From assembly GCF_001194135.2 (NCBI RefSeq), contig NC_068985.1, positions 123,942,895 through 124,006,894 of the forward strand: a DNA stretch of 64,000 nt, written 5' to 3'. A program made the translations under genes and the position numbers. The number at the start of each line of letters is the position of its first letter. The stretch's first letter is position 1. Positions 34,724 to 58,533 of the stretch are shown piece by piece. The stretch is from Octopus bimaculoides. Taxonomy: Eukaryota. The notes beneath the pieces are model-generated. The model had not been told where the DNA came from. It did not search any database and saw only the letters and a list, made by a program, of their open reading frames with translations.

Positions 34724-34917
34724 ATTTTCGTCTGCCGTTACGCTCTGAGTTCAAATTCCGCCGAGGTCGACTTTGCCTTTCATCCTTTCAGGGTCGATAA
34801 ATTAAGTACCAGTTGAACACTTGGGTCGATGTAATCGACTTAATCCCTTTGTCTGTCCTTGTTTGTCCCCTCTATATTTAGCCCCGTGTGGGCAATAAAG
34901 ACATAAGAAATAAGAAA
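34724..34917 (+). mobile_element. SINE family B, 5'-truncated, tail type 2 (Tx1-like LINE tail)
   Basis: gagttcaaattccgccgaggtcgactttgcctttcatcc core; tail ccctctatatttagccccgtgtgggcaataaaga matches the LINE end at 58497-58530. Confidence 0.9.
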
Positions 34918-34934
34918 CAGGTGAACACTTCGAT

Positions 34935-35230
34935 ACACAGTTTCAGGCTGGATGTTCAATTGTATTGAGATCTCTTCCCATTGGATCCAGCTGTAGCTCT
35001 GACTGCGTGTTGTGCATGATGCTTCTTTTTATGTAACATAAATTCATCAGTCAAATGTTGACACCATCAAGTAAATAGTTTGTTTGACTAAAAAGGAATC
35101 CATTCCCCAAACGACTGCCAATCTCCTGTACAACGCCATGCTGACGATACCGCGTTTCCTTTTATAGGCCAAGTGATAAAGTAGCTTTCTAATGTTCATC
35201 TCAATTGAATTGTAGTCTTTGGTTCTTCAT
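34935..35230 (-). mobile_element. Highly decayed Tc1-like transposase C-terminal remnant
   Basis: Minus frames give DLNTIEH (SPDLNPIE-like) and EFMLHKKKHHAQHAV (at the position of the QDNARPH motif). Confidence 0.4.
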
Positions 35231-36494
35231 CATTCATATATACTGAAATTGTTTGTTATAATTAATTATAAAAGAATACAAAAATAAACAAAAGAATAGC
35301 ATCCGAGTTATAAATGACGAAAGAGAACACACAATCGTATATACATGTGCATATACGTACATACATACAGAATATAAATATGCAAAGAAAATGTATGCAT
35401 ATATATACATATACATTCCATGCGAACATCAAGGGATTTTGCAAGTCCGTGACAATTTGACAACCGATATAACAAACGATCTTATAAAGTTCGACAGAAA
35501 ACGATGATGATGATGATGATGATGATGATGATGATGGTGGTGGTGGTGGTGGTGGTGGTGGTGGTGGTGGTGGTGATTAAGATATTGGGGAGGAAGACAA
35601 GGAGATTGATAATTATATTATTATTATTGTTGTTGCTCTTGTTATTATTAATATTATTATATTACTAAACAGCTTTGATGCTGTAACCGGTTTAATTATG
35701 TTCCCTATTGGATCGAAAGCCGTGATCTAGGAAAAGAAGTATTCTTGCCCCTCCTATTAAAGTTTTCCGTCTTTATGCTGTTAATATTTGTTATTACTTT
35801 GTATCGTCAACTTCCCTTATAATACTTGCGGAACCAGGAAAAAAAAATTTTTTTTTAACCTTGTACCTTCTACTTCCAAAGTTTACTCTCAAATTATTCG
35901 TTACAGATACAAAAATCAGGATGATAATTGGCAGAATCGTAACCTTGATACCCCTTCATTTCATTATTTGATTATTTTATACAAATTGGTAAATACTCGT
36001 ATTTTTGTGCGCGCTTTTGTGTTTTTCTGTTTCGCTTTCACTTTCTTTCTGCTGCCTTTCAATTCTGGTAACAAATATGCGCCACATCGATTACAAGACA
36101 TAACGTCTTCTTCTCAGAGGCTACAATTTCCGGCATATTGTGCTCCATTCTCGTTTCGGTTTGTATAGAAACTTGCCAGAACAAATTCGTTTTCAAAGAC
36201 TTTCATTTCTTTTCTCACATAATGGACTTCGTTTTTTTTTTTCCGTGCATTGAAAAACAAACCGCCAGAAAAATTTCCAATTTCATCACATCTGCAACCA
36301 TTTCGAGCTAACGACGAGTATTCTGATAGAATGTGGAGGGGGTAAAGTTTCATTTGTCTTTACCATCGTGAACAGTCCTCTTTATCTATCATTTCCTGGA
36401 TCCAATTTATATTGAGGGGTTTATCCATGCCTTAAGTTGCTAATATCATTTCCTGGGTCTTTTTCTTCAAATTTCACTTTGGTTCAACAGATTA

Positions 36495-55033: not shown

Positions 55034-55423
55034 GCGCAGGAGTGCTGTGAAGTTAGAAGCTTGCTTCCCAACCACATGGTCCCAGGCTCAGTCCTATTGT
55101 ATGAAACCTTGGGCAAGTGTCTTCTACAATAGCTTCGGGCCTTGTGAGTGGATTTGGTAGTCGGAAACTGAAAGAAGTCTGTCGTATAAATATATGTGTG
55201 TGTACGTTTGTATGTGTGTATGTATGAGTTTGTCCCATACCACAGCTTGACAGCCGGTGTTGGTGTATTTACATCCCTGTAACTAGCGGATCGGCAAAAG
55301 AGAATGACAGTTTATGTAACAGGTTTGAAAAATATGAGTACTAGGGTAGGTTCATTCGACTTAAAAATCCTTCAGGGCAGTGCCCCAGCATGACCACACT
55401 CTAATGGCTGAAGCAAATAAAGA
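55034..55423 (+). mobile_element. SINE family A, full length
   Basis: gcgcaggagtg head, ccttgggcaagtgtcttctac core, internal TA/TG tract, degraded tail. Confidence 0.85.
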
Positions 55424-57104
55424 TGCATTTATATATATATATATATATATATATATATATATATATATATATNNNNNNNNNNNNNNNNNNNNNNNNNNNN
55501 NNNNNNNNNNNNNNNNNNNNNNNNNNNNNNNNNNNNNNNNNNNNNNNNNNNNNNNNNNNNNNNNNNNNNNNNNNNNNNNNNNNNNNNNNNNNNNNNNNNN
55601 NNNNNNNNNNNNNNNNNNNNNNNNNNNNNNNNNNNNNNNNNNNNNNNNNNNNNNNNNNNNNNNNNNNNNNNNNNNNNNNNNNNNNNNNNNNNNNNNNNNN
55701 NNNNNNNNNNNNNNNNNNNNNNNNNNNNNNNNNNNNNNNNNNNNNNNNNNNNNTATACACATACATAGATATATATATATACACATATATATACATACAC
55801 AAACGCACGCACGCACACACGCACGCACACACTTCAGTTATTTACATACACGACTTTAAGCGAATTAGTTCATGCCCTTTCCGATTGTATATCTATTTAT
55901 TTATTTATTTATTTATTTATTTCAGTTTCATCCATCTCTTCGTACAAAACTTACAGAAGCTGAAATCTCCATAAATATTAGATAGGAGGTCTAGAAGTTT
56001 TTTCCGTTCAAAATCGTGAGTAGCTCATGAAAGAAGTAGCGTACTCTCTGGGAGCAATTTTAATAGATATTTGATTAATATCTTGAACACAAATGTATAA
56101 ATGCACACAGATTCACACGCACACACACACACACATACACACACACACACACACAATCGTGTGTGTGTTTAGTTGTGTATGTGCACGCACGACTGTGAGC
56201 AAACAGTACACTGTAATGGATATTGAAGTTATAAGTATGCATTATAGTTATATAATCATCGTAATTACTTGGTCAGCTGTGACTAAATTCTATCACCTAA
56301 TTACAACTAATCATCTAAAATAATTTATTACGACTATTAATTCTCATGGTATGTAATCTTTCTTTGTATCCGTGCTACAAAACTATTCCGTTACACCGGA
56401 CTGATTAAACCGACATTTTACAAATTAGATCATGATTCGCTGCCAGTAATTACTCACAAACGCCATCCGCATGGAAAAACAATAGTTAACTTAGTGTTAA
56501 CATATTCAATACAGTGAATATCAAAATGCAAATAAAAGATAATTATACACCCAGGAAATTACAGTATTAGCTCAATGACTAACTTTAATTAGATTTTTAG
56601 AATTACCATTAAAATGTAGAACTTATTCCATATTTGTAACTATTCTTCCGCTCTACATACTCTTCATCACCAGTTTATTTTGCTGTATATTTAGACAGTA
56701 TATTCCATTCTGTTTGACAAACAGCGAACATGTCGCTGTTTCGAGCGACAAAAACGTTGACACCATTTTACAAATAAATGTTTCAGTGAAGTTGAGTGTG
56801 TTTATTCATCCTATTTGCTTCAGTGACTGCTGTTGACGTTCATATTTGAGCTGAAATTTAGCCTAATCCACTAGGGCTATGATTAAAGACGTTTCAGCTG
56901 TGGCCATACTATATTTTCCCCAGATATATCAGGTTGAGTAAAAAGTAAGCAACGTTTTAATCCATGAAGAATTTGTACAGGATTTTTGCAGAGTTTTAAA
57001 TGTTTTAAACATTTTTTGCAATTGTCTGATAATACAGACACAGACTTGGCCAAATGCATCGTTAAATTAACATTGATATTTTTTCACCGTTGTTACAATC
57101 ATCT

Positions 57105-58533
57105 ATCACCATCATCTCCAGGTGCCGGAGAGGCAAGACGAGGGGCCGGTTAAAATGCTAGAGGTTTGGTTTGATCCAGACCTCCAAGTAGAGAAGAATT
57201 GGAGCAAGGTGACGAGCAGAATGATCCACCTAACTTAGACCTGGTCTGAGCGGCAGCTATCCCTGAAAGGAAGGGTGGAGGTCGCAGGAGTGTTTATCGC
57301 TTCTGTGATTACCTACCTCCTAACTGTCGTTTCTTGCCCCCGTTCGTGGCTGATCAAGTTGGAGTGGCTGCTCTCCCTCTTTTTGTGGAGGAGTAGAAGT
57401 CCTCTTGCTACGCGCTGTCTGCTGTCAGCACCCGCTAAAGGGTGGGCTAGGGATGCATTGGTTGTTGATGCGCGGACATGCGCTCAGGCTAAGGCATATG
57501 TAGCTGTACCTGGATGGTTAATAGGTGTGGTCTCCGTTCAAACGTTACATCTTGAGCTTACTAGTTTGAGTGAACTAGGACCTTGGATCAAGTGTAGACC
57601 AAAGTTGGGCGTTTGGCAAGCGGAACGTCATGAGGAACTCAAACTTCTCTCTCGCATGGGCAACGCTAGCGTCGGGGGTTCCACCTCGTCTTTCTATAGA
57701 GGGCTGGTAGAGGCTCAATGTGACGATGTCCTGAGGGAGACTCTAGGCTTCGATGAGGATCAACTAGCCAGTCTGTTCCGAAGGACATTCGGGTCAGGAC
57801 TCTTGGATAACCTCCAGTGATCCTTGTCCTGGTAGTATTAACGAGGAGCCTTACCAGTTCGCGATAAACTCGCAAGCCATGGTGCCCCTTGCACACCCAC
57901 GTGCCCAAGGTGCGAGCAGTACAGGGAAACCGTTCTGCACGCAATTGTGCAATGCCGCAAAATCTCTGAGATGTGGGTTTACGTTGAACATCTGCAGTCA
58001 CGGCTGCGAAGAGTACAACTGTCTTCCGAGTCGATTGCAATGATTGTTCCTCCTGCCTCTTTTAACAAAGAAGGCAAGGCTTGTCTTCTCGCTGTGATCA
58101 CTATAGCGAAAGAAGCGGTATGGAAGAACTGCGTGAAAGGAACCGTGACAGGCACATTCATCTGTAGCCTCGGACTGGTCCATTACCTCATCTACCACCT
58201 TAAGAGGGAAATAATGGTGGAGAGAAAATGCCTGTCACCTTATGTATATGGAAAAAGATGGAAGGCTGTGACGAGTTTGTTGCGAATGAATGAATCCACA
58301 TAGTGCATCCATAAGGTTATGCTAAAGGTTACAGTGGTGGCACGGGTCTTGCGCGGTCGAAGCAAAGCCCGTCCCCCACTTCAACTGTTTGTGTATTTGT
58401 TTTATTTATCATTTGTTTATCATTCGATTGTATAAATTTTTAACTTTTCACCTCTGTGTAAAAACCATACGCACCATCGGCCCTCATTTGTACCGTCCCT
58501 CTATGTTTGGCCCTCTGTGGGCAATAAAGAAAA
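57105..58533 (+). mobile_element. Tx1/L1-clade LINE, 5'-truncated, with a 17-bp TSD
   Basis: KMLEVWF..EKNWSKV..WSERQLSLKGRVEVA; zf-RVT CPRCEQYRETVLHAIVQC; stop at 58303; 3' UTR ending gcaataaagaaaa. TSD cgttgttacaatcatct at 57088-57104 and 58534-58550. Confidence 0.93.

Follow-up and report, generated by a model that had tools for sequence, protein, structure and literature searches.

The stretch analysed here, referred to as the window, comprises 64,000 nucleotides (nt) of Octopus bimaculoides DNA (contig NC_068985.1, positions 123,942,895 to 124,006,894), has 37% GC, consists almost wholly of repeats and contains 20 assembly gaps. It holds the remnant of a long interspersed element (LINE) and about 12 copies of a short interspersed element (SINE), here called SINE-B, which have a common head and core and carry one of three tail types: 1a, 1b and the LINE-like type 2. 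The subject of this work is the 3′ tail that SINE-B type 2 has in common with the LINE. The features that bear on it directly are the following, in window coordinates:

57088–57104, plus strand: upstream copy of the target-site duplication (TSD), CGTTGTTACAATCATCT, a perfect 17/17 direct repeat found by self-comparison at the boundary of LINE homology
57105–58533, plus strand: dead, 5′-truncated LINE of the L1/Tx1 type, with the C-terminal part of open reading frame 2 (ORF2; the region following the reverse transcriptase (RT), and a CCHC zf-RVT) and a 230-nt 3′ untranslated region (UTR); from translation, Pfam and tblastn
58485–58533, plus strand: 3′-terminal module of the LINE, common to SINE-B type 2 and holding a characteristic 34-mer (local alignment score 32)
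58510–58522, plus strand: predicted RNA hairpin in the window LINE, stem GCCC/GGGC, loop UCUGU
58534–58550, plus strand: downstream TSD copy, CGTTGTTACAATCATCT, which begins immediately 3′ of ...GGGCAATAAAGAAAA
34715–34905, plus strand: SINE-B copy c34, 5′-truncated, with a type-2 tail, 93% identical to the head and core consensus
40669–40877, minus strand: SINE-B copy c40, with a type-2 tail and an internal deletion, inserted in the head of a copy of SINE-A, the other abundant SINE

Translation of the region at 57.1–58.3 kb gave the decayed C-terminal part of ORF2, interrupted by frameshifts and stop codons, in which Pfam recognised the zf-RVT domain (E=4e-8). The nearest database proteins are about 50% identical to it, and tblastn with the related protein P0014 gave 46% identity over 396 amino acids. 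Since the 17/17 direct repeat stands exactly at both ends of the LINE, the segment 57105–58533 represents one 5′-truncated insertion, and the 34-mer is the true 3′ terminus of that insertion. The terminus lacks a long poly(A), and within the LINE nothing of a SINE core or head precedes the tail.

The 34-mer occurs at 58497–58530 (plus), 40672–40705 (minus) and 34868–34901 (plus). When searched as a degenerate pattern with up to three mismatches, it was found at exactly these three window sites and at none in 100 shuffles. Recounted identities of the SINE-B tails to the LINE 34-mer are 31/34 for 40672–40705 and 30/34 for 34868–34901. The local alignment score of 32 between the module and SINE-B type 2 compares with a shuffled mean of 7.4 (standard deviation 1.5), and 0 of 1000 shuffles scored as high. 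The proposal of the preliminary description that SINE-B type 2 carries the native 3′ terminus of an L1/Tx1-type LINE is thus upheld by the TSD-enclosed LINE end and by these matches. None of the compared elements spans an assembly gap, so gap continuity has no effect on the finding: the LINE and both TSD copies lie in the gap-free stretch 55754–60939, c40 ends 240 bases short of the gap at 41117, and the nearest gap to c34 is more than 1.6 kb away.

Relatives of the LINE, including the full-length P0015, contain an APE endonuclease (Exo_endo_phos), an RT (RVT_1) and zf-RVT. P0015 matches human L1 ORF2p, its closest solved relative, with E=1e-72 over residues 5–855 and R2 with E=6e-29. This layout, together with the far better match to human L1 ORF2p than to R2, places the family in the L1 clade (L1/Tx1 group), as judged by sequence comparison. 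L1-Tx1 is the sole L1-type category in published octopus repeat annotations.

The octopus DNA examined consisted of the window and two 21-kb loci, L012 from O. bimaculoides and L013 from O. sinensis, while LINE 3′ ends from other animals were obtained from the DNA around related proteins. Protein searches found no close octopus copies of the window LINE. In L012 the LINE fragment is disrupted short of its 3′ end, and the LINEs in L014 and L016 stop before the LINE end. A metagenome scan with the LINE protein profile yielded nothing confirmed. Six matches from a metagenome scan with the tail DNA pattern looked microbial and were taken as chance, and the single match of the type-1 tail in a GTDB genome scan, on a contig of a bacterial metagenome-assembled genome, was rejected as most likely due to chance.

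The preliminary description had pointed out that, if most full-length copies of this LINE lacked the 34-mer, the tail would have to be a SINE tail attached secondarily to one copy. The relatives examined do not bear this out: several LINEs of Argonauta hians and those of contigs L015 (JGI) and L004 (ENA) end with a homologous sequence. In the Argonauta locus L005, homologous LINE ends lie at about 11140–11192 and 4760–4847; one LINE of this locus ends in ...GTATCGTCCCCTCTATGTTTTTGCCCTTGTGGCTAATAAAAGAAATAA(TTA)4, and a second, heavily truncated one in ...GGACCCTTGTGGTCAATAAAAGAA(TTA)17. The Argonauta locus L001 contains a fragment of the 3′ UTR alone (12425–12655, ending ...TTCTGTGTCGGCCCTTGTGGCTAATAAAGAAATCTATTT), which was confirmed as LINE 3′ UTR by its match to the UTR of a neighbouring LINE (75% over 133 nt, E=6e-23). 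The LINE ends of L015 and L004 read ...GGGCCCTTGTGGCCAATAAAAGAAATC(ATT)n and ...CCTCTTGTGGCCAATCAAC..., respectively. In a cuttlefish, Acanthosepion pharaonis, the relative in L017 (8355–12616) is a 4.26-kb 5′-truncated insertion bounded by an 18-bp TSD, TTTTATTGTTGAGCAAAC (8337–8354 and 12617–12634). Its 3′ UTR of about 750 nt is roughly three times as long as those of its octopod relatives, and of the module it has only the hairpin motif, with GGCCTTGTGCC 30 nt before the end. When the UTRs of the window LINE and an Argonauta LINE were compared, only the last ~47 nt could be aligned (83% identity). The terminal module is, as far as these alignments go, the best-conserved part of the LINE 3′ UTR between genera.

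The SINE side was followed outside the window as well. Further SINE-B copies are present in L012 and L013, and L013 contains a young full-length type-2 copy with the TSD GGTAGTTT(AG). In Argonauta we found about 16 SINE copies with the SINE-B core, about 14 of which have a tail homologous to type 2. These tails show the variant of the Argonauta LINE itself, GGCCCTTGTGGCTAATAGAGAAATCTAT, and an Argonauta SINE aligned with the Argonauta LINE L001b with a local score of 39 (shuffled means about 7–9; 0/1000 as high). As octopus type 2 scores 32 with the window LINE and the Argonauta SINE 39 with its own LINE, in both genera the tail of the SINE follows that of the LINE. Argonauta also has a second SINE family, which has another head and no SINE-B core but bears the same LINE-derived tail. 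Three head-to-tail copies of this second family, each of about 155 nt with a tRNA-like head (GCTCAATTGGTAGAGCG...GTTCAATCCC), stand at 4899–5365 of L005; ARAGORN called no tRNA in the Argonauta stretch L005 4500–8000, the only one searched. As regards the insertion features, TSDs measure 17–18 bp for the LINE, 8–10 bp for the O. sinensis type-2 SINE, 13 bp for type 1b and 10–17 bp for the Argonauta SINEs. The preliminary description had made its case depend on the TSDs of tail-2 SINEs resembling those of the LINE, and the 8–17 bp of the type-2 and Argonauta SINEs indeed come near its 17–18 bp.

The tail types have in common a CCTTGTG-like motif, which had been regarded as a hinge where tails are exchanged. 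To characterise it we aligned 36 LINE and SINE tails, anchored on the motif. In every tail group a 4-bp stem can form around a 5-nt (C/U)UUGU loop: the stem is GCCC/GGGC in octopus type 2 and the window LINE, GGCC/GGCU in Argonauta, AGGC/GCCU in 1b, UGGC/GCCA or AGGC/GUCA in 1a, GACC/GGUC in L005b and GGCC/GGCC in L015. Three of the four stem pairs are thus altered on both sides across tail types with the pairing kept. The stem cells are paired in 88% of cases compared with 70% after shuffling (0/500), the covariation score is 0.53 compared with 0.22 (0/500), and in a control with slid partners just 13–44% of cells could pair. RNAalifold applied to the longer tails returned this helix and no other, and the hairpin appears in all seven single-sequence minimum-energy folds. 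CCTTGTG as a shared motif therefore stands, and its reading as a mere recombination hinge does not: the motif runs from the end of the 5′ stem arm through the loop into the beginning of the 3′ arm of a covarying hairpin, and is better read as a conserved, predicted RNA structure. The canonical polyadenylation signal AATAAA is also found in the conserved tail (58519–58533 in the LINE, and in all tail types), 5–6 nt before the element end; the insertions are nevertheless without poly(A).

The other SINE-B copies of the window, which mostly bear type-1 tails, are listed here:

13198–13341, minus strand: c13, 5′-truncated, type-1a tail
19764–19958, plus strand: c19, degenerate 1a-like tail
21604–21889, plus strand: c21, type-1a tail followed by (TTA)23, with (TTA)11 immediately upstream
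30766–30897, plus strand: c30, internally deleted, type-1a tail end
31013–31193, minus strand: c31a, type-1b tail
31516–31651, minus strand: c31b, 3′-truncated, with the same 5′ flank as c31a
43010–43221, minus strand: c43, 1a-like tail
47738–48148, minus strand: head-to-tail pair, c48a (47958–48148, 1b) then c47 (47738–47952, 1a), joined via TTATT
48541–48870, minus strand: head-to-tail array of a 1a-like tail with (TTA)4, c48b (48584–48797, 1b) with (TTA)3 and a partial SINE-B head (48541–48575)

Tail 1a reads GGCCTTGTG(T/C)CAAAATTTGAAACCA(TTA)n and is found at 21788–21817 (plus), 13198–13226 (minus), 47738–47765 (minus) and 30873–30897 (plus); tail 1b reads GGCCTTGTGCCTATAGTAGAAAGGA(TTA)n and is found at 48584–48611, 47958–47985 and 31013–31039 (all minus). 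The alternative tails of the preliminary description were thus recovered, with coordinates for 1a and 1b shifted by a few bases only. Divergence from the common head and core consensus is least in the type-2 copies (94, 93 and 87% identity; type 1, 76–90%), in what is a small sample. No Rfam match at E<=1 was obtained for a tRNA-derived head in a young full-length SINE-B copy, where Box A/B-like motifs are seen by eye only. The SINE-B core may be a Nin/Deu domain, a possibility that agrees with the label "tRNA-Deu" in octopus repeat papers.

The three octopus tails have a common layout consisting of the hairpin, about 12 A-rich bases (AAUAAAGAAA-like) and sometimes (TTA)n. All types align without gaps 3′ of the hairpin, with the conserved positions A..A....GAAA. 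SINE and LINE ends read ...AATAAAGAAA(A/T), followed immediately by the TSD, or else pass into (TTA)n; no A-run longer than four was met at SINE or LINE ends, whereas poly(A)-dependent, Alu-like mobilisation would call for a poly(A) tail on both. Types 1a and 1b are identical as far as GGCCTTGTGCC and thereafter differ at 6 of 14 positions, while type 2 parts from type 1 as soon as the core ends, about 40–50 nt 5′ of the motif, and has about 21 extra nt. The idea that the tails diverge at the hinge consequently fails for type 2 versus type 1 and holds just for the split between 1a and 1b, which lies right 3′ of the motif. In comparisons with LINE ends, 1b scored 19–20 against the (TTA)n-tailed ends L015 and L005a (0/1000 shuffles), and 1a scored 19 against the cuttlefish LINE end (30 of 38 aligned columns, 0/1000 shuffles) versus 7 against the window LINE. 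Hence the tails resemble the 3′ ends of one LINE group, so that mobilisation by several LINEs, as put forward earlier, is most likely to mean sublineages of one Tx1-like group. The tails look like variants of the 3′ end of that group, not tails of unrelated LINE clades.

The type-1 copies are also associated with (TTA)n. This repeat stands immediately 5′ of four of the eight intact SINE-B heads, versus a background of 1.7% (P=5e-6). The LINE ends L015, L005a and L005b and type-1 SINE-B adjoin (TTA)n, and one truncated Argonauta LINE end has a (TTA)n block on either side; the window LINE and the type-2 SINEs lie in unrelated targets. Type-1 SINE-B copies form head-to-tail arrays via (TTA)n or (TAG)n in the window (47738–48870, minus strand) and in L013 (7650–8560), a pattern suggesting that, time and again, a new copy inserted into the microsatellite tail of one already present.

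Several further observations concern single copies. The target of c40 is the SINE-A head, in the order GGCTGTGTGGTAA, c40, GAAGATTGTTTCCC (40669–40930, minus strand); the TSD is ambiguous (2–7 bp), as the tail end resembles the target. The SINE-A copy that hosts c40 adjoins a third, inverted tRNA-like SINE (40930–41116). Copies c31a and c31b have a common 5′ flank, ...ACAGACATT.ATACTTTAAATTAC..AGACCAA (31193–31260 and 31651–31720, minus strand), which indicates that they stem from a local duplication or belong to a larger composite repeat, and did not insert independently of each other.

Two other LINE-like elements were noted. The one at 22700–24800 (minus strand) has a YMDD RT motif and a C-terminal ILWDxPIxTD, and ends in ...CTCCCTCACTCAA(TAA)8 on its sense strand. 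The same end occurs in L013 at about 8540–8600, where it adjoins the (TTA)n tail of an oppositely oriented SINE-B, the two elements having one microsatellite between them. A LINE with (TAA)n on the sense strand was considered as a partner of type 1 and rejected, as the sole such element of the window has an unrelated 3′ end. The other is a CR1/L2-like fragment at 3047–3775 (plus strand), whose 3′ end, GGTGCTCCAG...GAAACATGTAAAAGAATAAAAG, resembles by eye the tail of SINE-A (34640–34700, plus strand). BLAST gave no significant match between this CR1-like LINE tail (about 3700–3775) and the SINE-A tail, and a second LINE/SINE pair is thus unconfirmed.

Taken together, the results lead us to propose, with a probability of roughly 0.7, that SINE-B is a stringent-type SINE whose last 45–65 nt were copied from the 3′ UTR terminus of a Tx1-like L1-clade LINE and have evolved with it, the LINE family being distributed across coleoid cephalopods. 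By this mechanism, the ORF2 protein of the LINE would recognise the hairpin and tail both on its own RNA and on SINE-B RNA, and target-primed reverse transcription would start at the recognised tail. Sublineages ending in (UUA)n may prefer (TTA)n repeats as insertion sites. On this view the three tail types of the octopus would be variants of one module: type 2 is the form in common with Argonauta and matches the subfamily of the window LINE, and 1a and 1b, which match the (TTA)n-tailed and cuttlefish-like LINE ends better, probably follow further sublineages within that LINE group. Either template switching at the conserved hairpin or co-evolution with the partner could account for the difference between 1a and 1b.

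Among the other explanations, the tail might originally have been the SINE's own, with this LINE copy gaining it from a SINE inserted next to or within it, or in the form of a chimeric complementary DNA, which would agree with a single LINE copy from the window and the more numerous tail-bearing SINE copies. Against this, the 17-bp TSD encloses the LINE body and tail as one insertion, the SINE core and head are missing upstream of the LINE tail, the LINEs of Argonauta, L015 and L004 end with the module as a continuation of alignable 3′ UTRs, and the cuttlefish LINE has the hairpin motif near its TSD-bounded end. Because other LINE copies end in a homologous module, an origin of the tail in the SINE is essentially excluded, and we regard it as largely refuted. 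Hardly more credible is simple drift or subfamily divergence within one SINE lineage with an unchanged LINE partner, such that the motif persists by descent and the hairpin has no function. The small sample, the relatedness of many copies and the thermodynamic weakness of a 4-bp stem would suit such a view, but in LINE and SINE lineages alike both partners were replaced, with complementarity kept, in three of the four pairs of the stem, the terminal ~45 nt are conserved between genera when the remaining UTR cannot be aligned, and the SINE tails of Argonauta and Octopus each fit the LINE variant of their own genus.

More weight, though still unlikely in our opinion, may be given to one SINE body that was re-tailed at a CCTTGTG hinge by recombination or template switching and mobilised by several LINE families, including those of other clades. 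Mollusc SINEs are documented to exchange heads and tails (PMC4758252), the identity of 1a and 1b up to GGCCTTGTGCC with differences clustered thereafter fits segment replacement, and 1a is nearer the cuttlefish-type LINE end than the window LINE. However, type 1 and type 2 split directly after the core, about 40–50 nt 5′ of the motif; around the motif the tails are free of gaps, with flanking positions conserved and stem changes compensatory, as in one homologous, functionally constrained module; every LINE end resembling any of the tails belongs to the same Tx1-like group; and the one additional LINE-like element with a (TAA)n tail in the window (about 22.86 kb, minus strand) is unrelated at its 3′ end and bears its repeat on the other strand.

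A number of points weigh against the proposed pairing of SINE-B with the Tx1-like LINE. In the window, L012 and L013 this tail was found on a single octopus LINE copy, and a 1a or 1b tail at the end of none. The scores of type-1 tails against LINE ends arise partly, for 1b, from the TTATTA common to both, and mononucleotide shuffling served as the control. As to the hairpin, the stem has just 4 bp, z-scores of the single-sequence folds are ordinary (−2.5 to +0.2), and in LINE L004 only two stem pairs out of four are left. A longer lower stem, seen in single-sequence folds, had to be rejected, with 17–28 of the 36 cells per pair unpaired across sequences. Moreover, the stem was derived from the same sequences on which it was tested and many rows are related copies, so that the shuffle counts overstate independence. 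Finally, membership of the LINE in the Tx1 subgroup is putative.

SINEs make up about 12% of the O. vulgaris genome and are a major part of octopus repeat content, and a named partner LINE with a candidate recognition hairpin opens their expansion to experiment. A broader scenario, which we offer tentatively and hold to be rather doubtful, is that a Tx1-like L1-clade LINE of coleoids has kept stringent 3′ hairpin recognition since before the octopod/cuttlefish split and, via successive tail variants including a (TTA)n-targeting sublineage, powered much of the octopus-specific SINE expansion; the pair would then be the first of an animal L1-clade LINE and a SINE with tail sharing. The octopus repeat papers that we searched describe abundant SINEs and active L1-Tx1 families but name no partner LINE, and no octopus or Tx1 pair is present in a 2013 table of LINE/SINE pairs.

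In the classic stringent mechanism, a LINE and a SINE have in common a tail that contains a conserved stem-loop (Kajikawa & Okada 2002; PMC4176376). Just as in eel UnaL2/UnaSINE1 and the zebrafish L2-type LINEs, the 3′ end of SINE-B is homologous to the LINE 3′ UTR terminus, and likewise there is a small stem-loop with a conserved loop and a compensating variable stem, no long poly(A), and a short repeat at the end in some lineages. Unlike pairs of that type, whose partners are L2, CR1 or RTE, the octopus LINE has an L1-clade layout, and its recognition is inferred from sequence. Mollusc "jigsaw" SINEs with Nin-DC/Deu-type cores likewise combine a conserved core with various tails, and, as we saw in Argonauta, more than one SINE family may bear a given tail (Matetovici 2016, PMC4758252; Piskurek & Jackson 2011); their partner LINEs were mostly unidentified, whereas a candidate partner is available here. 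SINEU resembles our case in that a LINE of the L1/Tx1 group was proposed as the mobiliser. It had been cited as a precedent for Tx1-driven tail sharing, which proved inexact, since SINEU ends in poly(A) and its link with Tx1 consists in shared insertion targets and 5′ heads, not in the 3′ tail (Kojima 2015, PMC4494074). Microsatellites, (TC)n and (TTC)n among them, are frequent targets of Tx1 families (Kojima 2015, PMC4494074; Kojima & Fujiwara 2004), and the (TTA)n association of type-1 SINE-B and some LINE relatives is comparable to this.

There is also a likeness to maize LINE1-1_ZM with ZmSINE2/3 and to Chlamydomonas L1-1_CR, where the last ~45–50 nt are conserved, contain a hairpin with compensatory changes and are common to SINEs; L1-tailed SINEs account for 3 among 58 pairs, all from maize or a green alga and none from an animal (Ohshima 2012, PMC3472496). 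The octopus pair differs from these in its cephalopod host, its Tx1-like LINE, its several tail variants and its (TTA)n-associated sublineage. It would add an animal case to the very short list of L1-clade LINEs that apparently require a specific 3′ sequence, and bears on the idea that the L1 clade started out with stringent recognition, which became relaxed in mammals (Ohshima 2012, PMC3472496). Stringent LINE/SINE pairing is already known as a kind, and the octopus pair is a new case in a clade where such pairs are rare.

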